This document shows, piece after piece, positions 15,834-49,592 of a DNA stretch of 64,000 bases; within the stretch, counting starts at the first letter, position 1; each line of letters starts with the position of its first letter. The notes beneath the pieces are model-generated. The model had not been told where the DNA came from, ran no database searches, and worked only from the letters and a program-made list of their open reading frames with translations. Position numbers and translations under genes: made by a program. Origin of the DNA: Bugula neritina (taxonomy: Eukaryota > Animalia > Bryozoa); the NCBI GenBank assembly GCA_964035545.1, contig OZ037769.1:3949929-4013928 (forward strand), in the 5' to 3' direction.

Positions 15834-18672
15834 TTACGCATGCTCAGACTTGAAGAACTTGTGATAAATTAAAACAAATAAAATTGGAACAATAATGACT
15901 AAGAAAGCAAGAGAAACGAGTAAGCATGGTACTGACAGGTTGATGGTGGACAGGCAGTTTCGAGGACGCTGACTTATCGTAGTTACTAAACTGGCATCAG
16001 TCATAAAAGCTGCCATATCTCGAGACCCATTGGTCTGCTGTTGCACCTTTTCCGATATAGCTTTCAGTTCTTCGTCTTTTCGAGATATTATTTTATCAAA
16101 TTTCTTTTTCTCTCGCTTACTGTCATTGGCCGTTTGTTGCTTATGATTAGACCAGTCTCTGTCTAAAAGAGCGTACGACTCCGAATCCTCGGGGTCGCTG
16201 TGTAATTCTATCATGTCCAGCACTGATTGGTTGCTTGCTGCAGCTAGTCCTGCTCCCATTTCCTCATCTTCACTAGTCTCCTGCTTCAATAAACAGTCCA
16301 AAATAAAACACACACAAGTACAACAATGACAGGGGATATATGATACACAAGTATTTATTTAAGGACAATGCCTCTTGAGTATCTAACTAAAACGCTGCCT
16401 ATATGAGACAGATGTTACCAGTTCAAACAGTGAAAAGTAGCAGTTTATATCTAGCATAGTATATTGGATAGCAATGTGGCATGAATCTTTGAATCAAATG
16501 ATTCAAAAGACTATAAGTTAAACTCATGAAATGCAGTAAATTTAAAGTGTAAACGTAGATTAATACCCATGAGTCAAGTTTGAATTCAATATTGTGGAAG
16601 AATTATTGTTTTAGAACATCATGATTATTATTGATTTGATGTTAAAAAGACACAAGTTTGTGTTCCTGAAGACTGTTCATTTAAATTATTAAATAAGTAG
16701 GTCTTCTTTAAACAATATTCAAAACAAGATTTTCAATTTTAAAAATCTGTGACAGTACTGTGATGAAATAAATTCTGTCTTACAAAAAATTTTGAACTTT
16801 ACAAATCCAACATTATCACCTAATTTAATGATGCCATCGATACAAGCTTCATATTTTATCAACAATCAACATTAATTAAACAGTTAAACCAACTCGAGAC
16901 CTGGCCCCCAATATATTGATGAGGAGATACTGCTACAATCTCTCTGTTACTAGTTCACATACATGATGTAGAGCGGATGTAGAAAGTTAAAAGCCAGGCC
17001 AGTCTACAAGAACTACTCTAACAATTTGTTGAACCACAGGCTTTGTAAGTTAACAGCTACCAGCACAAACTTGCAGTTTCTTATGCAGGTATCACATGCT
17101 GGTATTATTTAACACCACTCTGCCTATATAGCCTACCATGTTGAGCTCTTACAGGAAGAGATATGAAAATAATGACATGTCTCAAAAAGAAACCATTTTC
17201 TCAAGCAACAAATTCAGGTCCAGTAAATTTTCCACCTGTCAAAAAAACCTCAACATATTCTGAAGAATTTCCTTATTAATTAAATGCATTATTCATGCAA
17301 TTAGGAAGAGCTTTATGACTGGAAAGACGACTGTGAGTCCATGCCAACATAGTTTGGTTACACGTGATTTCAGCAGTGTAATTATGCTTTAAAATGTGAT
17401 AAATTACCTCCAAGTCACTTCCCTTTACCTATAACTAACGTGCCAGCTTATTTCTCCAAATGCATAAAAAGACGTGGCTCTGTATCATAATGAAGTGCAA
17501 ACTAGTAGTAGATATTTCAACATATGCAAGTTTTGAGAGATCAATTTGTCAATTAAATTAAATACTACAGAATATTTTCATGATTTCTCACAAAAAGCTA
17601 TAAGCAGATAAAGAAGTTACAAAGAATGAGCTAGAATCAGACCAAACATCTTTTGATTCTTTCATTTTGTGAAGGCTAAACTAGTTTCACAGATCCTAAA
17701 TTTGAAAGACACTCCTTTACTTTGTATACTACTTGAGCTGGAATTTGGTTATAGGTTATGGAGATATTAGTTATAGCGGATCAACTTTAGGATAAATTTT
17801 GACAATGTGATTGCAGTTTAATTCTGGATAATCATTAGATGATTTATTATTCTCTTACTTCCTCTACTTTATACAAAACCAAGACTTTTATTATCCGTAG
17901 AATAGAACTGCCACTTACACTGCTTACGATATCAGCTGTACACCGTTTCTTAGTTACAACTGCATCTTCTCCTGAGGTTAAACGGCTTTTAGCAACAGTT
18001 TCTAACTCTTGCTGTAGTAATCGCTGATGTGAACGTATAGGAATCTTAATAGAAGTCAATGCGTAGAACTCCTGGTCATTGTACAGTTTGTTGATTCGCT
18101 TAAGCTCTGGTATCTAAAACAAAATCAGAAAAATAAAACAAAAACTACTTTATTAGAGGGTTTTTAGTCAGTGTTGAACTAGAGAAATACTATCCCAATT
18201 ATATTATTTTGCACAAAAATGAAGAGTGTTTAACTGTAAATTATGCATGCTTAGCTTCACTTACTGGACATCTAAACTTGATGGATAAACTCTGGAGGGT
18301 GTCTGTTTTATGGAGTGGTATCTCTTTGGTGATAATGTCATCGAATTGACTAGACGCCATGGTTTTATAGGATCGCTGAGACTGACTGTCACCTGGTAAT
18401 GCCGTCCCTCTACGCGTCATCTGCGTTAACTCAACAGTTTCATCCTCCGTATCTGCTATCGTGCCGTCACTAAACACATACACTTTCTTGCTTTTCACAT
18501 TCTGCATTTGTCCTAATTGTTTGGCTCTATCTTCAGTTAATATGTTTGATTCTGTCTCGTTGCTATGACTACAATGGCGCTGTTTTCTTTTGTCTTTATC
18601 ACCATCTTGTGTAGAATAGCCATTATAATTGTCTGATGAGTCCAACAATTTAGTGTAACCTTTTTTACTCAT
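15834..18672 (-). CDS. LYSMD3: LysM domain-containing transmembrane protein (LYSMD3/LYSMD4 family)
   Basis: Coding exons 18672-18265, 18113-~17919 and 16280-15834. The LysM domain is split by an intron: KEIPLHKTDTLQSLSIKFRCP/IPELKRINKLYNDQEFYALTSIKIP. A hydrophobic C-terminal TM segment follows (LLVSLAFLVIIVPILFVLIY). A probable 5'UTR exon donor lies near 20030. LYSMD3 versus LYSMD4 cannot be resolved. Confidence 0.88.
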
Positions 18673-21707: not shown

Positions 21708-24700
21708 ATGGCTGCTGACTGTTCTAAAAGGTTTGAATAAAATTGAAATGTCCTTTAGAGAGTACATTTCATATTGACATATTCACTAAATATTGTTTTG
21801 TTTTTTCATAGTAATGCATAAATATTTTTTGTCGTCGATCTTTTGTTACTTTATGGAGATTAACCTTTCCTATTCTGTATTTCAGCAAGTGTGCGATACT
21901 GTTTGCTAAAATAAAGGAGTTGAATAATGACGTCTGGCCAATCGTCTACTCTCCAAATTACAATATCACTTTCTTTGGTATGGAAAAACTTCACCCTTTT
22001 GATTCGACAAAATGGGGCAATGTTTTTCGATACCTGCAAGGTTAGTGATCACTAGCCTACACTATACATGACAATCTAGTATTATAAACCAAGCGGAGAC
22101 ATATTGCTTTTCTCTTTCTTTGTCCCACTAAAAAGCTGGAAACTTAATATTTTTATTCAAAATATTGTTTTGTTCTTTGTAAAGAATATATTCTGATTTG
22201 TAAGACATTAATATGTTGTTGTTTGAAAATTGAATTTTCTGTGTTTTACCATTATTTCAGACTCTTGGTTTACATTTGATTTTTTTTAAAAAGTTGTGAA
22301 GTTTAATAAAGAAAAATAAATAGGTTCTTGCAATATTTTCTGTTTGATTAAATTATCTTCTTTCAATAATTAATTTTTTGTGGCAACAGTGAACAGAAGT
22401 AAATGCTTTTTTTTTGTTGATTTAGCAACATCAGCAAAATTATGTTAGGTTCAAATTCAAATATTGTATAGACTTTTCTAGAAGTGTCCTTGCTTTAATT
22501 TTTTTCTCCTATTTGTGCATAGAGCACAAGTAGTCTGTGAATCAGGAAAGATAAAATTGTCAGCATTGGACAGTTTCACTCTAGCTCAACCAATCAAAAG
22601 TGAGGACGCGTTTTATTGGATAGTGATATACTCATATATAAATGCTGTAACATATTTATCTTTATTACAGATAGCAATATGATTAATAAAGACACAGTTG
22701 TATGCCCTACAGAGATCAGCAAAGAACAACTTTTAGAGTTTCACACTGAAAGATATATTTCAAGTCTAAACGTACGAGTACCTTATAATAAATAAGCATT
22801 GCGTAATTCTGTCAGAACATCTTTAGATAATCTTCAGATTTGATCTGTTGAAGCGATTTTATTAGAAAAACCTGTCATTAAGCAGCTTCAAACATAGCAA
22901 TCCTGGTCAGCATATCATTATATAGCTTACAGTGTGAATGTTTTGGAACTGTGCAGAACTCGATTGCATTGGTACATCATGAAATTGATTTTTCAGTGGC
23001 ACATATATTATTGCTGCATGAATTTAACTAATGTCAAACTTTGTGTTGGTGTTTATAAAACAGTGCTTTGCATGGAATTACTCTTAAAGAATATTGTAAA
23101 ACTGATTATAAGTTAAAGCTTGGGTCTACAAAGATTACACAATTGTGAATATTTGTAATCAACTTATAAGTAGCAAATGCATATTATTATTAGGAATTAT
23201 TTATTGTTGATGACTTTCTTACTAAATTCTCATTTTTTACCGCCATGTCCTGAGCAAGTGGCGGGAAAACTTTATAGTCATTTTCCCTGTGAAAACCCTG
23301 GTGGAAATGGTTTTTTAAATTGGGCTAAGGACTTATTCATATGTAGCACAGGAGCAATTATGACTGGATGCTCTTCCTTACATCACCAATGACCTTTACT
23401 GGAGTTTGAACGCATGACTTCGGGTTTACTAAGCCAAACACTTCAACCCCAGAGCACTGCTTTCCTACTAAATCGCAATGGTTATTATTGTACTTTTAGT
23501 GGTCATCTAAAGTAGCAGTGATTACAGAGGTCCCACCTGTAGCCTGTCTTCCTAACATTGTAGTTCAAAGACGTCTGCTGAGTAAGCTGAGGCTACAGAC
23601 TTCAGGCACCATTATTGTAAGTTTCTCTCAATAATTTTTCATTTTGAAGTCTACTAACAATAATCAGTTTGTTCATAATTTGACAAACTGTTGGTTAGCT
23701 AAACACAACTCAATATTTCTGGTCATGTGACTCTACCTTCATATTCTAGCAATATTGTGTTTGATATTGTTCAGCACACATCTGTGGTCTGCTATAACTA
23801 TCAAGAGACTTTCTTAGCTTTTTAGAACTTAAGTCTTAGGCAAACAAGAGTAAAATTGAGTGACTGTTTATTACAGAATATTTAAAATTTTAAATATATC
23901 CTGTAATTTAAATCATATGGTGCCCTATATTATATGGCATATACTGAAATACTGCTCTTTCTATAGGCTGCCCGTTTAGCATTACTGAGACAATGGTCAA
24001 TTAACTTGGGCGGTGGGTTCCATCACTGCTCATCCGACAAAGGCGGTGGTTTCTGTGCCTATGCTGACATCAGCGGTGCTCTAAAGACTCTAAAGACAGA
24101 AGGGTTAATCAACTCGGCTCTTATAATAGATCTGGATGCTCATCAAGTAGGTCCAGTACCGTCTAATGAATCACAACTTTAGTGTGTCAAGTGCTGAACG
24201 TATTTCGTGAAATCCTGCTTAATATGTAACAGTATGCACATGTTGAAAGGATTTTTATGTACAAGTAGTTTTTTTTTAAATTTTTGATATATTGTTATCT
24301 TTTCAGTATTGTGGGTTAGTGTGCAATCGAGTGACTTGCTATCGTGTAAGCTAGATCAATTTCACCAGTGAGATTTGAATTATAAGAATATATTTGATAC
24401 AATGATACACAATCTAAAAACTACATCTATCAGAATACATCAACAGCTACTCAACACAGTGTCTACAGTTTGCCAGACTATTCCTAACTGACTGCTACGC
24501 TGGAAGCCACAGCTACTAATAATAGTTCATGATTCCTATTGGTGGGTTGCTGTCTCGGGTCATCTTCTTAAAATACTTAGTGACTCCGTGCTGCACTTAG
24601 GAAAGAAGTAACATTCCCCCCTCCCCCCCCCCCCCCCCCCGTTATTACGATGGTAGCTCCACGAGTCACCACAATATGACACATGCTGTCAGCTTGGTGC

Positions 24701-27178
24701 TTTTTTGACACACGCTGTAAAGTGAGTGTTTCATGACATTTTGACACAGAATGTGTGGTCAGTGTTCTATGATATTTTGACACACTGTCAGGTTGGGGTT
24801 GTGTCACTTTTTGACACACACTGTAAAGTGAGTGTTCTGTTATGCATGCTGTGTGCTCTATGTTGTGGCACACACTGCACAGTGTCTGTTTCAACATGTG
24901 ACTGTAATTATACTCTCTTTGTTCTTGTGTAGGGAAATGGCCACCAGAGAGATTTCAAAGATACTGATTGGGTTCACACACTAGATGTATATAATGGTAG
25001 CATCTACCCTGGTGATTATAAAGCCAAAGGTTAGAAGTTGTTTATTGTCGATACTATGGTTTACAAAGTGGGCCTTTATCTAGACACCCTTATTATTATA
25101 ATATCAATAAAATTTGGCTAATTTTGTCAAAGTCCTAAGTTAGTTTAAGATGCTTTGAAGTCTACTAAGTTCCTCCATAGTTTCTTTAAAGTCTGTTTTG
25201 TATAATTTTAATTTCAAAAGATTTTTATGAGGTTATGAAATTCATAAAATCAGCCGAAATAATCTAAAGCTACCAGTATGTTTTATTAAGAATTGAAAGC
25301 TGGAACAAATGGTATTTTTCTGCTGCCTCTAAATCACATGATCAAATTACCTGCACATGTCATATGAAAATACATCATTTTACCTGCAAATGCTAATCAC
25401 TTTGCTTATCTTAGCCAATTTAAATGTCTTTCTATTTTCTAGTTTTATCATTTCAGTCGATTTTAAAGCATGTTTGTTGTTTTGGAGCAAATTAATATGC
25501 ATTTAAAACAGAGTAATGACTGTTTTGTATAAATTATGTAGTTTAATTTCACAATTTGTTATCTATATGCATCATTACTTAGGTGAAAGTCAAACATATT
25601 TTTATTCAATTAGTAATCGTTTCATATATTTCTTTTTTCACGTTTTCAGAAATGAAAAATCTACTAGCCATTGAGCTGCGTTCATTTACCGCTGATGAAA
25701 AGTATTTGGATAAAGTTTCCAAGTAAGATGTTAGTAGTATATGTGGAGGATTTGGTACCCCATCTCTGTGGTACACTCCTAGCATCCCTGTGGTATGCTC
25801 CTAGCATCCCTGTGGTATGCTCCTAGCATCCCTGTGGTATGCTCATAGCATCCCTGTGGTATACTCATAGCATCCCTGCAGTATACTCCTAGCATCTCTG
25901 TGGTATGCTCATAGCATCCCTGTGGTATGCTCATAGCATCCCTGTGGTATACTTCTAGCATCCCTGTGGTATACTCCTAGCATCTTTGTGGTATACGCCT
26001 AGCATCCCTGTGGTATGCTCATAGCATCCCTGTGGTATACTCCTAGCTTCTCTAATAAAACATATAACAAACAATTCTAAAGTGTTGATTTCATTCCAAT
26101 GCCAATTCAACTTCTACTTTGGTTTTAGTGGATTAGATAGAATATTTTCTGTGATGGGACAGAGTCCTCCAGATATCATAGCCTATAATGCTGGGACAGA
26201 TTGTATGGTAGGGGACCCCTTAGGACAGCTTAGCATCAGCCCACAGGTATCTTGACTCAGCAAAAGTTACTTGCAATTTTTTTCTTTTCCCATAAAAGTT
26301 GTTGGCAGATTTAGTCAGTAATCAAGCATTTTTCTCTTCTAGCTATGTATCTTGTATTAGTAACACTACGAGTTTATAACTTGTATTAGTAACACTGTGA
26401 GTTCATATCTTGTATTAGTAACACTACGAGTTTATAACTTGTATTAGTAACACTGCGAGTTTATATCTTGTATTAGTTATACTGCAAGTTTATATCTTGT
26501 ATTAGTAACACTGCAAGTTTATATCTTGTATTAGTAACACGCAAGTTTATTTATTCCAACCTTTTGTACAATAATTCGTTTTAAAGACTGATGCTTATCA
26601 AGCTTGATACTTTTGAAATTTGCTAAATCATGAAATTTAAGTTGGATTTTACAAAAATAATCAATTAGTATGGTTTTTAATATGATTGTCATTCACAGTG
26701 GTAATAAATATGGCATTCAGGAGATATTTTGCCAACTTTCTCAAAACTTAAACTATTTAGGAGAAAATCTTGAGCTGGAAGATGGATCGTGAGACATTAC
26801 TAGCTTTGTACTAAAAGTATTTAGATCTAACTTTAGATTTGACTTATCACGTTATATTGTCTCGCAGTGTACACACAATACAAATTTAAAATGCAGTACA
26901 TGAATGAGCTACAAATAGCTTTCCAATGTTTAATTTATTCTTTTTAATTTCTAAAGTTTTGAATACTTTTTTGTTGTGGCAACATTTAAAGCTCTTACTG
27001 TTTTACACAGGGCATCATTAGACGAGACGAGATGGTTTTTAGACTGGCAAGAGAGAGAAAGATACCCATATTCATGGTACTCAGTGGTGGGTATCAACCT
27101 CAAACTGCTCAGGTCATCGCTGACTCTATTCTAAATCTAAAAGGTCAAGGTCTTGTAGCTCGAGAACTTAACTTATAG
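21708..27178 (+). CDS. HDAC11: Histone deacetylase 11 (class IV HDAC / lysine defatty-acylase)
   Basis: Nine coding exons (21708-21730, 21886-22040, 22671-22771, 23500-23616, 23967-24146, 24933-25029, 25650-25722, 26129-26246, 27011-27178) splice in frame. Motifs: WPIVYSPNYNITFFGMEKLHPFDSTKWG, INLGGGFHHCSSDKGGGFCAYADI, IIDLDAHQ/GNGH, YNAGTD, SGGYQ...IADSILNL. The start exon is less certain. Confidence 0.96.
23255..23460 (-). mobile_element. tRNA-derived SINE, degenerate copy in a HDAC11 intron
   Basis: Its reverse complement aligns by eye over about 190 bp with 41594-41790 (gtttggctta..agtcatg.gtt..aac..cagtaaagg.cat.ggt.atgt.a.gaagagc.tccagt.ataat..ctcctgtgc.ac...ccttagc). B-box-like GTTCAAACTCC. 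Confidence 0.75.
24700..24895. repeat. Degenerate ~35-bp minisatellite (TTTGACACAC.CTGTAAAGTGAGTGTT...) preceded by a poly-C run at ~24615-24640
   Basis: About 5-6 recurrences of (t)tgacacac at roughly 33-38-bp spacing inside a HDAC11 intron. Confidence 0.7.
25761..26047. repeat. 22-bp minisatellite TAGCATCCCTGTGGTATGCTCC, about 13 copies
   Basis: Head-to-tail copies with no spacers, in a HDAC11 intron. Confidence 0.95.
26348..26550. repeat. 29-bp minisatellite TTGTATTAGTAACACTGCGAGTTTATATC, about 7 copies
   Basis: Head-to-tail copies in a HDAC11 intron. Confidence 0.92.
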
Positions 27179-28034: not shown

Positions 28035-28040
28035 TTTATT
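28035..28040 (-). other. Polyadenylation signal AATAAA of the peptide-precursor gene
   Basis: TTTATT on the plus strand, 70 nt downstream of the stop codon at 28110. Confidence 0.65.
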
Positions 28041-28109: not shown

Positions 28110-31100
28110 TTACCCAAAAAACTTGTCCCAGACTTTTTTGGCTCCAGCAGCCAGTGCCTGACTACCTGCAGCTACAGCAGCACGGCAAGCAGAACTGCCA
28201 AGGCATGCTTTGAATGCAGCTGTTCCTGCAGCTATTGCTGTAGTAACTGTAAATACAATGACATCAACTTATTAATCTGTGGTAAAGCAATTACTTACAT
28301 TACACCATAATAAACCACTGTAATGAGTAATATTATACTTGTTAGTACTTTCTATTTATTAAACAATCTTTTTTTTCTATTTTTGTTCGCATTTCGAATC
28401 TTTTTACCTCTACTAATTTTAAAATAGCAAGCTTTAAATAAGCTTTATAGAACTTACTAAAATGTTAAATATTTATATATATTCACTCTTTTAAAACAAA
28501 AGTGAGAGTGTCTTTGTTACCTGATGCACATAATGCTCAAAATAAAAATATTTACACACCAACAGCTCTCTTTCCCCAGAGTTTGCCCCAAAGTTTCTTA
28601 ACTCCACCAACAACTGCATTAACACCATCTTTCACAATTTCTTGGCACTTTCCACTGGCAGCACATGCTTTAGCTGCAGCTGTTCCTAGAGCCACTGCTG
28701 TAGTAACTGTAAATATCATGACATGAACATTTTTAATATTTGATACAAGAAAAGTTACTTACATTACTGCATAATGGCCCACTGTAATGTCCAGTATAAA
28801 ACTTATTTTTATTCCTTTTATAGTTTAATACGTGTTTGTAACTCCACTAATCATAAATTCTATGAAAATTCAAGAAAAGCTCATAACTTTTTCATCATTT
28901 TTAAAATTTTGAAACACGATTGTTTTAAAATAAAATTGCATTTTTACCAAGCTTTTTGAATCTTAAGGTTTGTGAAAAAGAGCAATGAAATACTGATATT
29001 TTGTAAAAAGAACAATTTGAAGGTTTTACAATATAAACATATATAAACAGGACTGTTGTTTTCTCCTGTAAAATTGTCATGATTAAAACCACTTTTTCCA
29101 AGTCACCTGAGAGCAAATGAACTTCAGTTAACATTTTCTTACAACACATTTAGTGATCATGCCTATTCAACACTCAGCTGAGTCATCTAGTTTCACATGA
29201 AAATCTTTTTAATACTATAGCGAAGAACAAAAAAAACGAGAAAAAATATTTTTAGTTGTTTTCCAACAAGCCTGTTCCACAATGACCCCCTTCAACAACT
29301 TGGTTTAACATCTATAGCTACAACATGAAGAAAAACAGTGCTGACACTGTTTTCACTCCACCTAATGCTACTGTATTTTTGATAATCTTTCAGAAACATG
29401 TTTGTATAGTTAGAACAGTGTAATACTAATAAATATAAAATTTAATGGTTTTTTTATGAATTTTAAAGTTGCTAATACAATAAAGCTGCAATGAAGGTAT
29501 GCAATAACTGAAAAATATGTTCCTGTGATATTATCACCAACATGATATTCTTATACTTTAAGGCCAAGTGACCTGAGAACAGATCAAGCAGTTTTGAGAC
29601 ATAAGAATAGATAATTCCACTGATTATTTAATACTATTATATAGGCAATGATATTCAGCTTAATTAATTCCACATAATTAAATACTCTACATCTAATTGT
29701 GTGACAAAGACGGTTCAATACTAATAAATGTAAACTATATGCACACTCTCTATATAATGAGCTAGAATAATTCTATATTCTCTCAGTTAACAATTTTGTA
29801 TACTCAAAGTAGTTTACATACCAACAGCTCTCTTTCCTCCAAACCTGCTGGTAAGTTTATTCCACAAGAACTTGGCTCCTTCAGCAATTTTCTTAGCACC
29901 TGATTTCACAGCCTTAACACACTCACTACTAGCAGCACATGCTTTAGCTGCAGCTGTTCCTAGAGTTACTGCTGTAGTAACTGTAAATATCATGACATCA
30001 AGTCATTACCATTTAGTAAAACAACTGCTTACATTACAGCAAAATGATTTACTGTAATAACCAATTTAGTACTTGGTGCTAGTCTTTGCTTATATAATAA
30101 GGCTTTTCACATATCAACAGGTTGTTTTCCAACAAGCCTGCTCCACAATGACACCCCCCCCCCCCCCAACAACTTTGTTCAACATCTATAGCTACAGCGT
30201 GAAGAAAAACAGTGCTGACAGCACATGTTTTTACTCCACCTAATGCTACTGTATCTATGATAATCTTTCAGAAACATGTTTGTATAGTTAGAACAGTGTA
30301 ATACTAATAAATATATAATTTTATGTTTTTTTATGAATTTTAAAGTTGCTAATACAATAAAGCTGCAATGAAGGCATGCAATAACTGAAAAATATGTTCC
30401 TGTGATATTATCACCAACATGATATTCTTATACTTTAAGGCCAAGTGACCTGAGAACAGATCAAGCAGTTTTGAGACGTAAGAATAGATAATTCCACTGA
30501 TTATTTAATACTATTATATAGGCAATGATATTCAGCTTAATTAATTCCACATAATTAAATACTCTACATCTATTTGTGTGACAAAGACGGTTCAATACTA
30601 ATAAATGTAAACTATATGCACACTCTCTATATAATGAGCTAGAATAATTCTATATTCTCTCAGTTAGCAATTTTGTATACTCAAAGTAGTTTACATACCA
30701 ACAGCTCTCTTTCCTCCAAACCTGCTGGTAAGTTTATTCCACAAGAACTTGGCTCCTTCAGCAATTTTCTTAGCACCTGATTTCACAGCCTTAACACACT
30801 CACTACTAGCAGCACATGCTTTAGCTGCAGCTGTTCCTAGAGTTACTGCTGTAGTAACTGTAAATATCATCACATGAGCATTTTTAATATTTGATACAAG
30901 AAAAAGTTACTTACATTACTGCATAATGGCTTAGTCTAATGTCCAGTATAAAACTTATTTTTATTCTTTATTAAGTTTAATGCCTTTTTGCAACTCCACT
31001 AATTATAAATGCTATGAAAATTCAAGAAAAGCTCATAACTTTTTCGTCATTTTTAAAACTTCCAGAAGCACAATTGTTTTAAAATAAAATTGTATTTTTT

Positions 31101-34100
31101 TACCAAGCTTTTTAAATCTTAAAGTTTGTGAATAAAAGGCAATGAAATACTGTTAAATTGTAGAAAGAACAGTTTGAAGGTTTTACAATATAAACAGGAC
31201 TGTTGTTTTCTTCTGTAAAACTGTCATTAAAACCACTTTTTTCAAGTCACCTGAGAGCAAACCAACTTTAGCTAACATTTTCTTACAACACATTAAATGA
31301 TCATGCCTATTCAACACTCAGCTGAGTCATCTAGTTTCACATAAAAAGTGATTTTAATACTATAGCAAAGAACATTAAAAACGAGAAAAAATATTTTTAG
31401 TTGTTTTCCAACAAGCCTGTTCCACAATGACGCCCTTCAACAACTTGGTTTAACATCTATAGCTACAACATGAAGAAAAACAGTGCTGACACTGTTTTCA
31501 CTCCACCTAATGCTACTGTATCTATGATAATCTTTCAGAAACATGTTTGTATAGTTAGAACAGTGTAATACTAATAAATATATAATTTTATGTTTTTTTA
31601 TGAATTTTAAAGTTGCTAATACAATAAAGCTGCAATGAAGGCATGCAATAACTGAAAAATATGTTCCTGTGATATTATCACCAACATGATATTCTTATAC
31701 TTTAAGGCCAAGTGACCTGAGAACAGATCAAGCAGTTTTGAGACGTTTACGAATAGATAATTCCACTGATTATTTAATACTATTATATAGGCAATGATAT
31801 TCAGCTTAATTAATTCCACATAATTAAATACTCTACATCTAATTGTGTGACAAAGACGGTTCAATACTAATAAATGTAAACTATATGCACACTCTCTATA
31901 TAATGAGCTAGAATAATTCTATATTCTCTCAGTTAGCAATTTTGTATACTCAAAGTAGTTTACATACCAACAGCTCTCTTTCCCCAGAGTTTGCCCCAAA
32001 TTTTTTTAACTCCATCAACAGCTGCATTAACACCATCTTTCACAATTTCTTGGCACTTCCCACTGGCAGCACATGCTTTAGCTGCAGCTGTTCCTAGAGC
32101 CACTGCTGTAGTAACTGTAAATATCATGACATGAACATTTTTAATATTTGATACAAGAAAAGTTACTTACATTACTGCATAATGGCCCACTGTAATGTCC
32201 AGTATAAAACTTATTTTTATTCCTTTTATAGTTTAATGCGTGTTTGTAACTCCACTAATCATAAATGCTATGAAAATTCAAGAAAAGCTCATAACTTTTT
32301 CATCATTTTTATAACTTTGAAACACAATTGTTTTAAAATAAGATTGCATTTTTTACCAAGCTTTTTGAATCTTAAGGTATGTGAAAAAGAGCAATGAAAT
32401 ACTGATATTTTGTAAAAAGAACAATTTGAAGGTTTTACAATATAAACATATATAAACAGGACTGTTGTTTTCTCCTGTAAAATTGTCATGATTAAAACCA
32501 CTTTTTCCAAGTCACCTGAGAGCAAATGAACTTCAGTTAACATTTTCTTACAACACATTTAGTGATCATGCCTATTCAACACTCAGCTGAGTCATCTAGT
32601 TTCACATGAAAATCTTTTTAATACTATAGCGAAGAACAAAAAAAACGAGAAAAAATATTTTTAGTTGTTTTCCAACAAGCCTGTTCCACAATGACCCCCT
32701 TCAACAACTTGGTTTAACATCTATAGCTACAACATGAAGAAAAACAGTGCTGACACTGTTTTCACTCCACCTAATGCTACTGTATTTTTGATAATCTTTC
32801 AGAAACATGTTTGTATAGTTAGAACAGTGTAATACTAATAAATATAAAATTTAATGGTTTTTTATGAATTTTAAAGTTGCTAATACAATAAAGCTGCAAT
32901 GAAGGTATGCAATAACTGAAAAATATGTTCCTGTGATATTATCACCAACATGATATTCTTATACTTTAAGGCCAAGTGACCTGAGAACAGATCAAGCAGT
33001 TTTGAGACGTAAGAATAGATAATTCCACTGATTATTTAATACTATTATATAGGCAATGATATTCAGCTTAATTAATTCCACATAATTAAATACTCTACAT
33101 CTATTTGTGTGACAAAGACGGTTCAATACTAATAAATGTAAACTATATGCACACTCTCTATATAATGAGCTAGAATAATTCTATATTCTCTCAGTTAGCA
33201 ATTTTGTATACTCAAAGTAGTTTACATACCAACAGCTCTCTTTCCTCCAAACCTGCTGGTAAGTTTATTCCACAAGAACTTGGCTCCTTCAGCAATTTTC
33301 TTAGCACCTGATTTCACAGCCTTAACACACTCACTACTAGCAGCACATGCTTTAGCTGCAGCTGTTCCTAGAGTTACTGCTGTAGTAACTGTAAATATCA
33401 TCACATGAGCATTTTTAATATTTGATACAAGAAAAAGTTACTTACATTACTGCATAATGGCTTAGTCTAATGTCCAGTATAAAACTTATTTTTATTCTTT
33501 ATTAAGTTTAATGCCTTTTTGCAACTCCACTAATTATAAAGGCTATGAAAATTCAAGAAAAGCTCATAACTTTTTCGTCATTTTTAAAACTTCCAGAAGC
33601 ACAATTGTTTTAAAATAAAATTGTATTTTTTTACCAAGCTTTTTAAATCTTAAAGTTTGTGAATAAAAGGCAATGAAATACTGATAAATTGTAGAAAGAA
33701 CAGTTTGAAGGTTTTACAATATAAACAGGACTGTTGTTTTCTTCTGTAAAACTGTCATTAAAACCACTTTTTTCAAGTCACCTGAGAGCAAACCAACTTT
33801 AGCTAACATTTTCTTACAACACATTAAATGATCCTGCCTATTCAACACTCAGCTGAGTCATCTAGTTTCACATAAAAAGTGATTTTAATACTATAGCAAA
33901 GAACATTAAAAACGAGAAAAAATATTTTTAGTTGTTTTCCAACAAGCCTGTTCCACAATGACGCCCTTCAACAACTTGGTTTAACATCTATAGCTACAAC
34001 ATGAAGAAAAACAGTGCTGACACTGTTTTCACTCCACCTAATGCTACTGTATCTATGATAATCTTTCAGAAACGCATGTTTGTATAGTTAGAACAGTGTA

Positions 34101-37100
34101 ATACTAATAAATATATAATTTAATGTTTTTTTATGAATTTTAAAGTTGCTAATACAATAAAGCTGCAATGAAGGCATGCAATAACTGAAAAATATGTTCC
34201 TGTGATATTATCACCAACATGATATTCTTATACTTTAAGGCCAAGTGACCTGAGAACATATCAAGCAGTTTTGAGACGTAAGAATAGATAATTCCACTGA
34301 TTATTTAATACTATTATATAGGCAATGATATTCAGCTTAATTAATTCCACATAATTAAATACTCTACATCTAATTGTGTGACAAAGACGGTTCAATACTA
34401 ATAAATGTAAACTATATGCACACTCTCTATATAATGAGCTAGAATAATTCTATATTCTCTCAGTTAGCAATTTTGTATACTCAAAGTAGTTTACATACCA
34501 ACAGCTCTCTTTCCTCCAAACCTGCTGGTAAGTTTATTCCACAAGAACTTGGCTCCTTCAGCAATTTTCTTAGCACCTGATTTCACAGCCTTAACACACT
34601 CACTACTAGCAGCACATGCTGTGGCTGCAGCTTTTCCTAGAGTTATTGCTGTAGTAACTGTAAACATCATGACATCAAGTCATTACCATTTAGTAAAACA
34701 ACTGCTTACATTACAGCAAAATGACTTACTGTAATAACCAATTTAGTACTTGGTGCTAGTCTTTGCTTATATAATAAGGCTTTTCACATATCAACAGGTT
34801 GTTTTCCAACAAGCCTGCTCTACAATGACACCCCCCCCCCCCCCCAACAACTTTGTTCAACATCTATAGCTACAGCGTGAAGAAAAACAGTGCTGACAGC
34901 ACATGTTTTTACTCCACCTAATGCTACTGTATCTATGATAATCTTTCAGAAACATGTTTGTATAGTTAGAACAGTGTAATACTAATAAATATATAATTTT
35001 ATGTTTTTTTATGAATTTTAAAGTTGCTAATACAATAAAGCTGCAATGAAGGTATGCAATAACTGAAAAATATGTTCCTGTGATATTATCACCAACATGA
35101 TATTCTTATACTTTAAGGCCAAGTGACCTGAGAACATATCAAGCAATTTTGAGACGTAAGAATAGATAATTCCACTGATTATTTAATACTATTATATAGG
35201 CAATGATATTCAGCTTAATTAATTCCACATAATTAAATACTCTACATCTAATTGTGTGACAAAGAAGGTTCAATACTAATAAATGTAAACTATATGCACA
35301 CTCTCTATATAATGAGCTAGAATAATTCTATATTCTCTCAGTTAGCAATTTTGTATACTCAAAGTAGTTTACATACCAACAGCTCTCTTTCCTCCAAACC
35401 TGCTGGTAAGTTTATTCCACAAGAACTTGGCTCCTTCAGCAATTTTCTTAGCACCTGATTTCACAGCCTTAACACACTCACTACTAGCAGCACATGCTTT
35501 AGCTGCAGCTGTTCCTAGAGTTACTGCTGTAGTAACTGTAAATATCATCACATGAGCATTTTTAACATTTGATACAAGAAAAAGTTACTTACATTACTGC
35601 ATAATGGCTTAGTCTAATGTCCAGTATAAAACTTATTTTTATTCTTTATTAAGTTTAATGCCTTTTTGCAACTCCACTAATTATAAATGCTATGAAAATT
35701 CAAGAAAAGCTCATAACTTTTTCGTCATTTTTAAAACTTCCAGAAGCACAATTGTTTTAAAAAAAAATTGTATTTTTTTACCAAGCTTTTTAAATCTTAA
35801 AGTTTGTGAATAAAAGGCAATGAAATACTGATAAATTGTAGAAAGAACAGTTTGAAGGTTTTACAATATAAACAGGACTGTTGTTTTCTTCTGTAAAACT
35901 GTCATTAAAACCACTTTTTTCAAGTCACCTGAGAGCAAACCAACTTTAGCTAACATTTTCTTACAACACATTTAGTGATCATGCCTATTCAACACTCAGC
36001 TGAGTCATCTAGTTTCACATAAAAAGTGATTTCAATACTATAGCAAAGAACATTAAAAACGAGAAAAAATATTTTTAGTTCTTTTCCAACAAGCCTGTTC
36101 CACAATGACCCCCTTCAACAACTTGGTTTAACATCTATAGCTACAACATGAAGAAAAACAGTGCTGACACTGTTTTCACCCCACCTAATGCTACTGTATC
36201 TATGATAATCTTTCAGAAACATGTTTGTATAGTTAGAACAGTGTAATACTAATAAATATATAATTTCATGTTTTTTTTATGAATTTTAAAGTTGCTAATA
36301 CAATAAAGCTGCAATGAAGGTATGCAATAACTGAAAAATATGTTCCTGTGATATTATCACCAACATGATATTCTTATACTTTAAGGCCAAGTGACCTGAG
36401 AACATATCAAGCAGTTTTGAGACGCAAGAATAGATAATTCCACTGATTATTTAATACTATTGTATAGGCAATGATATTCAGCTTAATTAATTCCACATAA
36501 TTAAATACTCTACATCTAATTGTGTGACAAAGAAGGTTCAATACTAATAAATGTAAACTATATGCACACTCTCTATATAATGAGCTAGAATAATTCTATA
36601 TTCTCTCAGTTAGCAATTTTGTATACTCAAAGTAGTTTACATACCAACAGCTCTCTTTCCTCCAAACCTGCTGGTAAGTTTATTCCACAAGAACTTGGCT
36701 CCTTCAGCAATTTTCTTAGCACCTGATTTCACAGCCTTAACACACTCACTACTAGCAGCACATGCTTTAGCTGCAGCTGTTCCTAGAGTTACTGCTGTAG
36801 TAACTGTAAATATCATGACATCAAGTCATTACCATTTAGTAAAACAACTGCTTACATTACAGCAAAATGACTTACTGTAATAACCAATTTAGTACTTGGT
36901 GCTAGTCGTTGCTTATATAATAAGGCTTTTCACATATCAACAGGTTGTTTTCCAACAAGCCTGCTCTACAATGACACCCCCCCCCCCCCCCCCCCCCAAC
37001 AACTTTGTTCAACATCTATAGCTACAGCGTGAAGAAAAACAGTGCTGACAGCACATGTTTTTACTCCACCTAATGCTACTGTATCTATGATAATCTTTCA

Positions 37101-39281
37101 GAAACATGTTTGTATAGTTAGAACAGTGTAATACTGATAAATATAAAATTTAACGTTTTTTATGAATTTTAAAGTTGATAACACAATAAAACTGCTAAAT
37201 GCAATGAAGGCATGTATTAACTGAAAATTCTTTTCCTTGTAAAATTACCACTAACATAACATGTTCAAACTTTAGGCCAAGCCACCTAAGAACAGCTAGA
37301 TCAATTTTTGAAAACCTTTTACTTGAATTTTTTCTATAACCACTATATTTTAATTTTTCTTATCACATGTCGTTTCACATGAAAGCAGTTTTGAGATGAG
37401 AGCAGATAATTGCACCAAAATTAAAATGCTACTAGTATATGTGGTTGAGGTCTTTTTGACAAAAAGCACGTTTCAGCTAGGAAATTAATAAAATGCTGAA
37501 ATGAACTCGCTTTGCTTATATTGGTGAACTGATAGAGTATATTATTTAATATCTCAAATATGTTTATGAAAAAATATACTGATAAATATTAAACTTTCAG
37601 TTTGCTATTTGTTGGTGATAGTTTTTCTCAACCAGCTCTCGTATACTCAAAGTAGTTTACATACCAACAGCTCTTTTTCCCCAGAGTTTGCCCCAAATTT
37701 TTTTGGCTCCATCAGCAACTGCTGTAGCAGCTCCAGATAAGACACTTTTGCAAGTTGTGCTACCAAGACATGCCTTTCCTGCAGCTAATGCTGTTCCAAT
37801 AACATCTACTCTTTTGTCTACGAAACAAGAAGCTTTCTAATTTAGCAGTCATATGCAGGTTACATGTATTGAGTAGCAGACTAGTAACAACAAACTTTAA
37901 AACTAAATACTAATAAGTCTGCATTTTTGATTATTCTTACGGTATAAAGTTTTGCATGCCTGCAGTTTTTTCAATAGACTTTTTACAATCTTTGTTTTGC
38001 AGCCACTATGAATGGTCAAACTTCAAAAATGTTGTGCAGTTGATTTTGAAAATGTTTAAGTGCTTAAAAAGTAGTTTTTAATAAAAGGCATTTTTTTGCA
38101 TTTCAATTAGTTGCTGACTTTAGTCTTACCAGTGGCAGCTTCAAAAACTTTGTTGACAACTCCATGCACAGCCTCTTTGCATTGATCATTCTGAGCACAG
38201 AATTTTACAGCATTTGAGAGAACCTGCTTCACCTTGTCAAACTCTTCATCAACAAAGTCTAGTTTGTCAGCTGTAACAATAGATTCGATTTATAAGGCGA
38301 CAGTTAATCATGAGATGACAACTCTGAACTCAAATATAGTTATATAAGGAAGAATCTGAAAGTCTTTCTATGTGAACTGATAGTTGTAATTGCTTAGGCA
38401 GGTAAAACTAACGTATATTCTGTAAATCTCATAGGTACTTACCTACAAGTTCTTTAGCATCAGCCAGACCATTTCTAGTAGACTCTGAAATATTGATATA
38501 GTTTTGTTATTAGAATGCTACAACTGTGTATACATACAGCTCATATATATCTTATTATATGCAATATATTATATTCAAAGTTGATAGACCAACAAATGTG
38601 CATATAAACATGAAAAATTAGTTGGAAAGATACAAGAATTATTTGGTAATTGCATAGATCAACAAATGTGCATATAAACATGAAAAATTAGTTGGAAAGA
38701 TACAAGAATTATTTGGTAATTGCATAGATCAAAATTCAAAAATGTATGACTCACTATTGACCTAAATTTGTTGTTTATAGTTAAAATTTTAGCCATTGTT
38801 TGGTTATGTAGGTTTATGAATTTTAAAAATGCTATGACACTTGGAAATTGTGAGAAATCATTTTTCTGGCATGTGCAAAATTGAATGTTCAACATTTGTG
38901 CAGTTTAATGGCAAAATTGAATAAAAACCTGTGTTCTATACTACTATAAATGAAGCAAAAAGCGATGTTCTCACAAAAATTTCCAACCAAATTTTACCAC
39001 ATCTTTTAGCAAAATAAAAAGCCTGGGTGATATCTCAATTTCCTCACTGTTGCAACTAACTGAAAGCTTTATTGTAACTAAGTGTTGCATTTCTATGGCA
39101 TAATACAAATTCAAACTGAGTATATTGAACTTAACAACTTGTCATTAATCAAGCTATTATTTAACATTATTTACAAACCTTTGAAGATGTCTAGAAGAGA
39201 ATGGACTCCTTCTTCAACATGTTGGAAAACATTTGCGTTGGCGACGGCAACAGCCAGGAAAAGGATTGCAAGCACTTTCAT
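28110..39281 (-). CDS. Secreted multi-copy peptide precursor (607 aa): signal peptide, acidic pro-region and ten KR-delimited, amidation-signalled, C-X5-C cationic peptides; putative antimicrobial/cytolytic polyprotein
   Basis: Thirteen coding exons: 39281-39179, 38484-38443, 38270-38130, 37817-37665, 36803-36645, 35535-35377, 34657-34499, 33388-33230, 32114-31968, 30857-30699, 29980-29822, 28706-28560, 28246-28110. All introns are GT..AG and phase 1, and the internal exons are 42/141/153/159/147 nt. The total of 1824 nt has no internal stop. The protein starts MKVLAILFLAVAVANA, repeats end in G-KR, and the last ends DKFFG*. The structure is read from the sequence; the function is inferred. 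Confidence 0.9.
28550..37720. repeat. Tandem array of exon+intron units (about 877, 1262 and 1269 bp) with near-identical introns
   Basis: Successive exon 3' ends at 28560, 29822, 30699, 31968, 33230, 34499, 35377, 36645 and 37665 give spacings of 1262, 877, 1269, 1262, 1269, 878, 1268 and 1020 bp. A shared ~550-bp intron block recurs in the units (diverged in the last one). Confidence 0.97.
38591..38730. repeat. Perfect 70-bp tandem duplication in intron 2 of the peptide-precursor gene
   Basis: 38591-38660 is identical to 38661-38730 (aacaaatgtg...tgcatagatc). Confidence 0.95.
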
Positions 39282-39570
39282 CTTCAGTTCACTACAAAAT
39301 CATATATCAGTTCACATATTATATTATATATTATATTATACTACGGACTACAGCATGCTGGATAAGTGTAATATTACCAACACAAACTAAGATTTTATCA
39401 TGGTTACTAATTATCATTTTAACATGATGTCCGTTGCAGCAACACTTAGTGAAAATGTTTAAAACATTGAACAAGATGCAAGCTAAACATGAATTGAAGA
39501 AATTGTTTACTGCAAAATACTAATTTTATAAACAAGTGCTAAAAGTGAGTATTAGAGAAGAATATATTAC

Positions 39571-39690
39571 CTGAATGTGAGTCTATATGGATGAAAGTCA
39601 GGTGAGTTGTGACTGATGAGTTATCGGAAAGCACCAACTTTTATACCCTTGGAGGCACCATGTGTTGGTTCCCATCGCCACACTGACGTA
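39571..39690 (-). promoter_or_regulatory. Core promoter and non-coding exon 1 of the peptide-precursor gene: TATA box, Inr, CRE-like site
   Basis: On the minus strand, TATAAAA (39645-39639) lies 31 nt upstream of the A (39614) of an initiator TCAGTC. Exon 1 (39614-39571) ends CAG|GTAAT and can splice to the acceptor at 39291, 10 nt before the ATG. TGACGTA lies at 39684-39690. Confidence 0.78.
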
Positions 39691-43278: not shown

Positions 43279-45317
<2,039 letters not shown>

Positions 45318-47160: not shown

Positions 47161-49592
47161 TTAGAAGCCGTGAACCTGTAAACACAAAAATACCAGATAT
47201 TTTAAACTATTTATTCACTAAGTCCTACAAACAACACGCTTTAAAGTTTGTTAGCATCAGATTAGAGTGTCCGTAGTCCGTACCAATAGATTATTCAGAT
47301 AAAATTAGAAGTTGCACACCTTTTCACAACCTATGCACATGTATACACAACTCCAACAAACTAAACTACATCACTAGTCAAATAAAGGTTCAACAAAACT
47401 GCTGAGCAGTGGGTTCATAGGATAATGCATCCCTCTTTCCACTGTTTGTACTGTAAACTGTCAACTAATAGTTATGCTAGTATTCATTTACTATAATAAA
47501 TACTTCATTTACCATCACAAGTAAAACTTGTGTAGTGAATAGATTATTTACATAAACTAAATTATACAAGCACCTAGACCACCTCTTCCTTTGATGGATA
47601 AAAGGTTGAGATTTCGCACTAACCTTGAGCTGCGATTCGTCAGCCAGATTCATTCTTAAAAGGAAGTCTTTGATGGACATTCTCTGATCACCCTGTAGCT
47701 GTATAACCTCCCCCCACTCGGCATGCTCCACCACTGTACCATTGCAGGCAAACTCCTACACAAGTACATGTGTGTACCTACACTACACAGCAACTTTACA
47801 CAAGCTTCACGGAGCTTACGCCAGATAAGTAGCTGATGTTTAATTGAAGCAAATGTGTCGAGTAGATACTACGTCTAGTTTTATAAATTGAACCACAGGC
47901 TAAATAGAAAACCACTAAGGTACCTTTTTGCATGTTTTCACAATCTTTTTTAAATCGTATTTAGGATTAATTCCTTGCACAGTGGTTAATGTCTTTCGTC
48001 CATTCCTTTGCTGAATTCTTATGTGAATGAAGTCTTCACCATGTGCTCCACCCTTGTCATCCTTAGAAGCATCAGCAAACGGGTCTACAAATTAGAAAAC
48101 AAACTCTCATTGATAAAGATTACTATACCCATTGTCTATAATATATTTAGCCATATTTGGATGTAATTGTTCACTCAAAGCTAAATACTGGCAAAAATAA
48201 ATATCATCTTGCAGATTTCTTACGCAAACGAAAAAATTAGTCAACTGTTGAATATTTACTGTGAATATAGCAATAAACAAACTAAAACCAAGAAAATAAG
48301 AAAATCAAACAAATAACTTAAACTTTAAGTATAGTACTATTATTATGCATCAATATTAATTTAAGTAAAGAGCTGCTGCTACATATTAAACTTCAAGTCA
48401 AATCTTTTGCTAGCCACAGCCCTATCTATCACTGTCACATCAATAAATTATAATCATAATCATATTGCTAATATCAGTTATACTTCTATAACTTATTATT
48501 ATTAGTTATTAGCATGCATTTGATGTAGTATAAGTTTTAATTTTAGTCTGTCACTATTACTAGTAGTAGCATTACTAGTACAATAGTATTAATCAACAAC
48601 CAACATGAATAGACATAGGCTAGTATTACTATTACTATTGGCATTAGTAGCTTAGGATCACCGCAAGTATAAATATAAATAAGTATAAATAAACATGGCT
48701 CAATGGCTGACTAAATTCAGATTGTTACTCTTACTCTTACTATTAACAAATATTACTATAACACTAAATGACTAATAAGTAATAGTAATACTATTACCTA
48801 CTATTAGTAAAATCATTGGTAACAATTTACTTTAGTGAGTCATACTCATGCTCCTATTGATAATATTAATACATAATGTTGCATAATGATACTATTAGTA
48901 TTACTAACAGTAATACTCATACTATGACATTTAATAATTACCAAAGTAGTCAGTAGAGACTAAATCGCTATGATATTGATAGCAATACTAATAGTAATAG
49001 TTATAGTTTAAATTATCAACACTAGCCTAGTCTAGTCACACTCATAGTGATAGTGAATATTCATAATTATAATAACAACCTGAAATTGAAAGTTAAACTA
49101 AATAACAATCGTAGCGATAATAATAATGATAGTGATACTGATAGTTCACAGTACTGGTACATGTACTAGAAGTAGTAGACGTACTCGGTTCTGTACTCGT
49201 AGTCCAAGTTATAATAATAATTATAATCATGATAATGATTCATTGATTGATGATCATTATGATAATAAAAATCATACTCATAGTGATGGTGGTAGTCAAC
49301 TGTCAATGTCATAGTGACAAACAATTTGAATTTGAAGTTTTAATTACAATTTGAATTATTGATAATAATTTACTGATAATCAATATCATAAAATTAAATT
49401 ATAATAATAATCACACTGATAATGTTTAATTTATAATTAATTTATCTTTAAAAAAATCTATAATATTAATTATAAATTAAAATACGAATATTGGAATAAT
49501 CAAAATGAAAATGAATTATTTTAATTTTATAAATATATTATCAATTATAATTATTAATTACCGAAAGTGGTGAGATTTTGGATATTGGACAT
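47161..49592 (-). CDS. EIF1: Eukaryotic translation initiation factor 1 (SUI1)
   Basis: Exons 49592-49562, 48084-47924, 47755-47624 and 47175-47161: MSNIQNLTTF/DPFADASK...IHIRIQQRNGRKTLTTVQGI...KK/EFACNGTVVEHAEWGEVIQLQGDQR...QLK/VHGF*. Confidence 0.98.

Follow-up and report, generated by a model that had tools for sequence, protein, structure and literature searches.

Symmetric single-peptide exons in a predicted secreted polyprotein gene of the bryozoan Bugula neritina

INTRODUCTION

Tandem duplication of peptide exons has been described in pipid frogs. Tandem-duplicated peptide exons with near-zero divergence occur in the magainin and caerulein genes of Xenopus laevis (PMC3731216) and in the hymenochirin genes of Hymenochirus (PMC3899252). 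The discussion of these genes has turned on dose amplification, unequal crossing-over and gene conversion, with alternative splicing as a further possibility. Here we describe a gene of Bugula neritina with ten predicted peptides on ten exons. It lies on the minus strand of a 64 000-nucleotide (nt) window (assembly GCA_964035545.1, contig OZ037769.1, positions 3,949,929 to 4,013,928), and Bugula coordinates below count from the first base of that window. Since symmetric duplicated exons, crossing-over and dose amplification are established in frog skin-peptide genes, the architecture alone is no new idea. Here it is attached to a peptide family that seems undescribed, and it comes with an informative contrast in intron presence and absence between two bryozoan genera, Bugula and Watersipora.

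Like the Bugula gene, the pipid-frog genes encode a signal peptide, an acidic spacer or propiece, and several copies of amphipathic, often amidated peptides on duplicated exons. The Bugula gene has the leader with acidic propiece, the near-identical duplicated exons and the dibasic and Gly sites. However, the frog genes derive from the cck gene and have no sequence relationship to the Bugula family; no homology to cck-derived frog precursors was found in Pfam or in an exhaustive profile search that covered 1.84 billion representatives. The frog repeat is two exons and includes an acidic spacer, while Bugula has one exon per peptide, no spacer and a predicted internal disulfide ring.

Other systems share single features. 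Precursors of the insect peptides apidaecin and hymenoptaecin contain many copies of one defence peptide, in numbers that differ among genes and species, which is read as dose amplification; like the predicted Bugula precursor they are multi-copy and are cut by processing. To our knowledge the insect repeats are not arranged as one exon per peptide and have spacers or dipeptidyl-peptidase motifs between them, and their sequences are unrelated to Bugula. Patthy is said to have recognized class 1-1 symmetric exon modules in secreted animal proteins (an exon-shuffling rule). Those modules have the same phase-1 junctions, exons that can be duplicated or shuffled in frame, and a secreted product, but they are autonomously folding domains, whereas the Bugula module is a short peptide, probably released by processing, whose duplication has stayed inside this one gene. 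Searched in six frames, the entire 216 009 554-base genome contained the module at this single locus, with no copy shuffled into unrelated genes. Calcitonin-type hormones have an N-terminal 7-residue ring and a C-terminal Pro-amide, and the frog 'Rana box' is a C-terminal ring. The Bugula peptides are like both in the C-x5-C ring and a predicted helical segment, and like calcitonin only in the predicted amide. Their ring is central (residues 14-20 or 17-23), unlike either, the residue ahead of the amide donor is W, F or G rather than Pro, and neither Pfam nor the PDB profile gave a sequence match to calcitonin-type or Rana box peptides.

Bryozoa are known mainly for bryostatins, which are made by symbionts. 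The locus offers ten candidate peptides ready for synthesis and a marker for the family, namely a ring and a predicted amidated aromatic tail encoded beside HDAC11. Between them, Bugula and Watersipora offer a clean natural contrast: one and the same repeat-peptide gene with and without an intron for each repeat. It provides a test case for intron multiplication or loss in tandem arrays, and for the speed of copy-number change in intron-separated cassettes versus repeats within an exon.

RESULTS

Exons of the peptide array

Array exons were mapped by a pattern search for boundary motifs with separate translation of each exon, and self-BLAST was also used. Tandem Repeats Finder overlooked the array, whose repeat period is >500 nt. 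The peptide exons, all on the minus strand, run in the order A-B-B-B-B-C-B-B-C-D. Exon A (153 nt, 37665..37817) opens with D-K-R, so a dibasic site precedes the first peptide too; a 43-residue peptide ending in W, G-KR and A-V-G| follow. Five of the six B exons are identical: B1 (36645..36803), B2 (35377..35535), B4 (33230..33388), B5 (30699..30857) and B6 (29822..29980), each of 159 nt. The B1 peptide has a net charge of +6 and ends R-F-G, after which comes G-KR. Exon B3 (159 nt, 34499..34657) differs from the other B exons at 4 nt. One of these substitutions is synonymous and three change the amino acid (V>I, T>K, K>T), including a charge-preserving T/K swap. Exon C1 (147 nt, 31968..32114) has a B-like 5′ third and an A-like 3′ end; C2 (147 nt, 28560..28706) is 5 nt off C1 (three amino-acid changes, two synonymous). 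The terminal exon D (28110..28246) encodes the last peptide, whose F-F-G runs directly into TAA (28110-28112).

All introns of the gene are GT..AG, and all coding junctions are in phase 1. The acceptor TTTACAG precedes every B, C and D exon, and these exons open with TTACTACAGCA. The A, B and C exons close with AGAGCTGTTG, and the donor that follows is GTATGTAAAC, but GTGTGTAAAT after C2. Internal exons begin with two bases of a split codon and end with one, which puts both boundaries in phase 1 and makes the length a multiple of three. The exons of this 1-1 class are the propiece exons E3 and E4 along with A, B1-B6, C1 and C2, with lengths of 42, 141, 153, 159 or 147 nt. Each unit exon encodes the body of one peptide and its Gly-Lys-Arg, and closes with Ala-Val of the following peptide and the first base (G) of the Val codon after that; the intron falls 7 nt past the Lys-Arg codons, inside the third codon of the next peptide. 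A sequence-only reading of the window had given repeat exons of 147, 153 or 159 nt with phase-1 ends and this same content, with uniform AG| starts (B, C, D) and |GT ends (repeat exons) and a B:C ratio of 6:2. Lengths, phases and content were confirmed by pattern search and per-exon translation, the uniform starts and ends by the boundary-motif search, and the ratio by the exon listing.

A second in-frame AG lies 9 nt into every B, C and D exon (TTACTACAG|CA; for example 36795-36803 in B1 and 28238-28246 in D). Splicing at this inner AG would drop three residues and give a 14-residue spacing to the first Cys, as in peptide A, in Watersipora and in a Tara Oceans fragment described below. Symmetric 1-1 exons with the complete G-KR/AV context can be duplicated, deleted, reordered or skipped with no change to frame or site. 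It had been claimed that duplicating, deleting or skipping a B or C exon leaves frame, cleavage sites and mature N-terminus intact. By construction this holds for the frame and the cleavage sites, while the mature N-terminus would depend on which acceptor AG is used.

Introns and recent exchange

The nine inter-peptide introns (28707..37664, minus strand) comprise three recent types, of ~1110 nt (three introns), 1115 nt (two) and 718/719 nt (two), plus the A>B1 intron of 861 nt and the C2>D intron of 313 nt. Exon plus intron make a repeat unit of 0.88-1.27 kb. Introns are 98.6-99.5% identical within a type and 85-95% across types; identity to the other introns drops to 66-79% for A>B1, and the C2>D intron is practically unalignable. 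A donor-side block of ~570 nt is common to all repeat introns, and three acceptor-side blocks vary: one of ~540 nt before B exons, a 95% variant of it always before C, and one of 140 nt before B1, B3 and B6. The closest partner of each intron block switches at or near exons, so several separate exchange events are required, with crossovers likely to have fallen in the identical exons. A mosaic is also seen within exon C, whose first third is B-like and whose last 40 nt equal the end of exon A bar one mismatch. The earlier suggestion that unequal crossing-over drives the array gains support from the identity of same-type introns, the block mosaic and the exon C mosaic. It is well supported that the array is young and grew through recent unequal recombination, a mechanism that the sequence comparisons suggest.

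Among the five identical B exons not one site varies. In the 500 nt downstream, 3.6% of sites do, a rate that predicts 5.8 variable exon sites against none observed (Poisson P(0) = 0.003). Invariant exons beside variable downstream sequence point to purifying selection and/or gene conversion.

The 3′ ends of C1 (31968-32007) and A (37665-37704) are near-equal although the exon middles are strongly diverged, which points to exchange or conversion across exons that are not neighbours. Each of the three acceptor-side blocks of the short type (30140-30170, 34820-34850 and 36975-37000) has a homopolymer run, C as read on the plus strand and G in the direction of the gene, whose length varies over ~12-20 nt. 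Length polymorphism and sequencing errors are likely to concentrate at these runs.

No further copy of the intron DNA occurs elsewhere in the 216-Mb genome, and an introner or transposon source was rejected for this reason. Origin of the introns from decayed peptide units turned into introns was likewise rejected: no coding remnant was found in any intron frame (all scores <5 bits). An Rfam scan of 27.5-40 kb at E up to 0.1 gave no match, so the conserved introns host no known RNA.

Exons upstream of the array

The gene has 14 exons: a 5′ untranslated region (5′UTR) exon, a signal-peptide exon, two acidic exons and the ten peptide exons. All 13 coding exons are open, and their lengths add up to 1821 nt or 607 codons. 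E1 (39571..39614, minus strand as for all exons) is the non-coding 5′UTR exon; its end with the donor (ATAGACTCACAT.CAG|GTAA) is kept in both Watersipora paralogs, and its start is approximate because it was placed from a TATA-like box. That box (TATAAAA core, 39638..39648, minus strand) lies upstream of the putative transcription start and would, by its sequence, act in the promoter; a TATA-like motif aligns at the matching place upstream of both Watersipora genes. E2 (39179..39291) has the ATG (39279-39281), a 16-residue hydrophobic signal peptide ending A-N-A and the start of the propiece, and ends in phase 1. E3 (42 nt, 38443..38484) is a symmetric phase 1-1 propiece exon with a 42-nt counterpart in Watersipora. 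E4 (141 nt, 38130..38270) is a symmetric phase 1-1 acidic exon with a net charge of -3 and its own C-x5-C, and it too has a Watersipora ortholog. Together E2-E4 encode an acidic propiece. When the E4 alignment was compared with the peptide alignment by hhalign, a weak match to the module centre was found (E 5.4e-5, probability 66%, 26 columns). The shared C-x5-C and this alignment make it probable that E4, in the acidic propiece, stems from an early copy of the peptide module that has since diverged. At the other end of the gene the polyadenylation signal AATAAA (28035..28040, minus strand) lies 72 nt past the stop codon. The E2>E3 intron contains a 70-nt tandem repeat (2.1 copies, 98% identical, 38584-38732).

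Relatives and the Watersipora locus

Family and structure searches were made exon by exon. The profile search yielded three matches, two of them related and one a spurious bacterial repeat protein. The first related match (P0001; E 1e-56) covers nine stretches of XP_067930520.1, which comes from the cheilostome bryozoan Watersipora subatra and is annotated as an "uncharacterized protein". The second (P0002; E 5e-25) is an unassigned fragment of 137 residues in a Tara Oceans metatranscriptome, in which three units stand back to back. To judge from this metatranscript, the family is real and is transcribed elsewhere. Pfam gave no family for four exons at E up to 10, and for the Watersipora exon only a Con-6 repeat match without stretches. 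The PDB sequence profile gave nothing meaningful (best E 0.65), and the best ESM Atlas score was 0.80, under lead level. A word-index protein search with exon B, covering targets of 29-91 residues only, came back blank, and one with the Tara fragment returned only the fragment itself, its candidates flooded by poly-Ala words. Scanning JGI metagenome contigs with the unit alignment gave 383 pattern matches and confirmed none. No Bugula RNA-derived sequence was among the matches of the profile, word-index or JGI contig searches. The literal peptide strings are absent from the 8.4 million papers searched, and the searched literature describes no gene-encoded bryozoan defence or signalling peptide of this kind. 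From these searches the family appears to be undescribed and restricted to bryozoans.

In the window an HDAC11-like gene with a Hist_deacetyl match (23955-27160, plus strand) ends ~1 kb from the 3′ end of the peptide gene, tail-to-tail. The same arrangement, with an HDAC gene tail-to-tail downstream of the peptide locus, is found at the Watersipora locus (L011), so the two loci are orthologous. Kept in both species are the end of the 5′UTR exon, the signal exon, the 42-nt exon, the ~141-nt acidic C-x5-C exon and the phase-1 junctions. The Watersipora locus also shares the signal peptide and propiece exons, the HDAC11 neighbour, the C-x5-C, the putatively amidated aromatic tail and the Gly-stop ending, which closes both Watersipora genes as it does Bugula exon D. 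It differs from Bugula in having two tandem genes, ~7% diverged, with six (W1) and three (W2) peptide units, in holding all peptides of each gene within one uninterrupted terminal exon, and in its far less cationic peptides. The six W1 units form a 330-codon open frame that ends in Gly-stop, and within it a two-peptide block of 330 nt is duplicated with four mismatches. The Bugula and Watersipora orthologs differ by nine introns.

Copy number had been expected to vary across species at the HDAC11-linked locus. It does: there are 6 + 3 units in Watersipora against ten in Bugula, and copy number and unit mix vary both between the species and between the Watersipora paralogs. Because units inside single Watersipora exons vary in number, one intron per peptide is not needed for variability.

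The signal-peptide exon of W2 (L011:17453-17512) has an in-frame TAG at codon 20 (17510-17512). RefSeq XP_067930520.1 (L011:10001-31162) omits this exon and joins W1, W2 and a low-complexity exon (30911-31159) inside the HDAC gene; this fusion makes the RefSeq model a chimera.

Predicted peptides

The ten Bugula peptides are 43-50 residues long, with no spacers between them and 19-38% Ala. The C-x5-C is invariant and central in the peptide, and a 7-residue disulfide ring is predicted there; its first Cys is residue 14 in peptide A and residue 17 in B, C and D. The tail W-x-K-[LIF]-[FW]-Gly is kept across the three taxa, to which the B type adds T-S-R-F-G. By sequence, the processing sites are G-K-R after nine of the peptides and Gly-stop after the tenth. 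Secretion of the peptides, cleavage at Lys-Arg, amidation and the disulfide would all follow from such motifs, and the Bugula genome contains loci with Cu2_monoox_C (amidating-monooxygenase-type) and proprotein-convertase P-domain matches. Net charge is +3 to +6 for the Bugula peptides and +1 to +3 for those of Watersipora. The maximal hydrophobic moment in an 18-residue window is 2-4 standard deviations (SD) over shuffled sequences for most units of the family; among the Bugula peptides most are 2-3.4 SD over shuffles, with peptide A at 1.7 SD and D at 0.5 SD. A helical form is predicted for every peptide, and an amphipathic stretch is present in most. AlphaFold models two helices interrupted at the ring, at low confidence (predicted local distance difference test, pLDDT, 64).

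DISCUSSION

We regard the following explanation as probable as a whole. One minus-strand Bugula gene would encode a secreted prepro-polyprotein made of a signal peptide, an acidic propiece and ten peptides. The peptides would be freed at Lys-Arg, the preceding Gly serving amidation, and each would have one exon, a symmetric 1-1 cassette that carries an entire cleavage site. Repeated unequal homologous recombination between the exon+intron units would have enlarged the array recently, and purifying selection and/or gene conversion would keep the B exons identical. Constitutive splicing is the likely default and would give a fixed dose of 1 A : 6 B : 2 C : 1 D per transcript, so that copy number would shift over evolutionary time by recombination, not by regulated splicing. 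Symmetry is a precondition for the survival of any exon duplicate and is not evidence of tuning, and cassette exons would permit copy-number variation but are not required for it. Of the original interpretation, frame neutrality, unequal recombination and copy-number change between species have stood; allelic copy-number variation, exon skipping and adaptive tuning of the B:C ratio are its conjectural parts.

The peptides of such a polyprotein could be membrane-active host-defence peptides, which we hold to be somewhat better than an even chance. A defence role is favoured by the acidic propiece ahead of cationic amphipathic cargo, by multi-copy dosing and by the restriction to one lineage. 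Several points weigh against the explanation as a whole. The Watersipora charges of only +1 to +3 weaken a classical cationic antimicrobial reading, the strongly conserved, putatively amidated tail would suit a receptor ligand too, and the structure model of the peptide is of low confidence. We infer exon inclusion, the choice between the two acceptor AGs and expression in Bugula from the sequence. Recent duplicates are open by default, so intact repeat exons alone are no proof of selection. The copy number of the assembly could also differ among individuals or be slightly misassembled.

Three alternatives bear on the peptides and the array. If the peptides were signalling ligands (neuro- or endocrine, or a cue for settlement or metamorphosis) rather than membrane-active, it would fit that the parts best conserved in the three taxa are the ring and the tail W-x-K-[LIF]-[FW]-amide, typical of receptor-binding epitopes, that the Watersipora units are nearly neutral, and that a disulfide ring with a C-terminal amide is reminiscent of calcitonin-type hormones. 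We think this rather unlikely: the peptides are long (43-54 residues), Ala-rich, amphipathic and back-to-back without acidic spacers, the acidic propiece stands ahead of cationic cargo, the ring is central rather than N-terminal with Pro-amide lacking, and the family is lineage-restricted with fast-diverging peptide bodies. Regulated use of the cassettes, in which B and C exons are skipped or chosen to give isoforms that differ in peptide number and B:C ratio, is still more doubtful. The internal exons are symmetric with identical donors and acceptors, so any donor-acceptor pair joins in frame with no premature stop after skipping, and frog hymenochirin transcripts with 2-6 repeats have been interpreted in this way (PMC3899252). 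But the splice sites, with GTATGT donors, are uniform and strong and give no hint that any exon is weak or regulated, and the Watersipora ortholog holds all units of a gene in one exon, where splicing cannot vary them; we argue from these two observations that skipping is not the main point. Near-identical exons would also gain little diversity by splicing, as Roelants et al. noted (PMC3731216). An artefact of assembly (expansion or collapse) or a decaying pseudogene is very improbable. Near-identical 1-kb repeats are difficult to assemble, and the second Watersipora paralog has the in-frame stop in its signal exon; against this, the introns of the units differ by 1-7% and the unit order is non-periodic, which HiFi reads can easily anchor; every one of the 13 coding exons is open between canonical splice sites; and another genus has kept the older exons A, D and E2-E4.

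The origin of the nine introns is a separate matter, on which two accounts compete. In one, to which we give an even chance, the one-per-peptide introns are the ancestral state and the whole 3′ set disappeared from Watersipora in a single step, for instance through recombination with reverse-transcribed mRNA. Watersipora retains the 5′ introns (E1-E4, same phases) and has none 3′ of them, and 5′ introns kept with 3′ introns lost is the pattern expected from reverse-transcriptase-mediated, 3′-biased intron loss. The diverged Bugula exons A, B/C and D have a common intron position, which must therefore be old within the Bugula lineage, and both species have E4, probably a diverged module, as a 1-1 exon. 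However, E4 boundaries do not match those of the peptide exons, the comparison is one of two species with no outgroup, and a phylogeny of unit types against the species split gave no resolution, the sequences being too short. In the other account, which we place just short of even, the Bugula lineage gained just one phase-1 intron, within a multi-peptide exon. Unequal crossing-over between the homologous peptide exons on either side then made hybrid middle exons with an intron copy on each flank, and this unit was amplified. A single event would be enough. Middle exons begin like D and end like A, C too having the A-like end, as a hybrid-exon model has it. Intron-split peptides have 17 residues to the first Cys against 14 in peptide A, the Watersipora units and the first Tara unit, and the three extra residues correspond to the 9-nt TTACTACAG, which resembles a duplicated acceptor. 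Set against gain are the lack of other genomic copies of the intron DNA, so that no introner or transposon source is visible, introns free of coding remnant, and a likeness of intron ends to coding sequence of just 6-7 nt; intron gain is also rare in most animals. A bolder combined picture, with a new intron copied nine-fold or a purge in Watersipora, and with the Bugula cassettes as a copy-number-polymorphic, perhaps splice-variable dial for new ring-containing amidated defence peptides, is speculative and, we think, unlikely as a whole.

SURROUNDINGS OF THE GENE

HDAC11 and eIF1 had been named as the flanking genes, and the Hist_deacetyl and SUI1 matches bear this out: a SUI1/eIF1 exon (47477-47734, minus strand) lies ~8 kb upstream of the peptide gene. 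Two exons further left in the window were identified by eye only, one MLH1-like (5602-5820) and the other NDUFS4-like (2428-2661). The window is AT-rich (~31% G+C) eukaryotic DNA and is not human. Between the peptide gene and eIF1, the interval 43600-45000 is very AT-rich with TA-rich simple repeats, and G+C falls to 18.7% in 44-46 kb.

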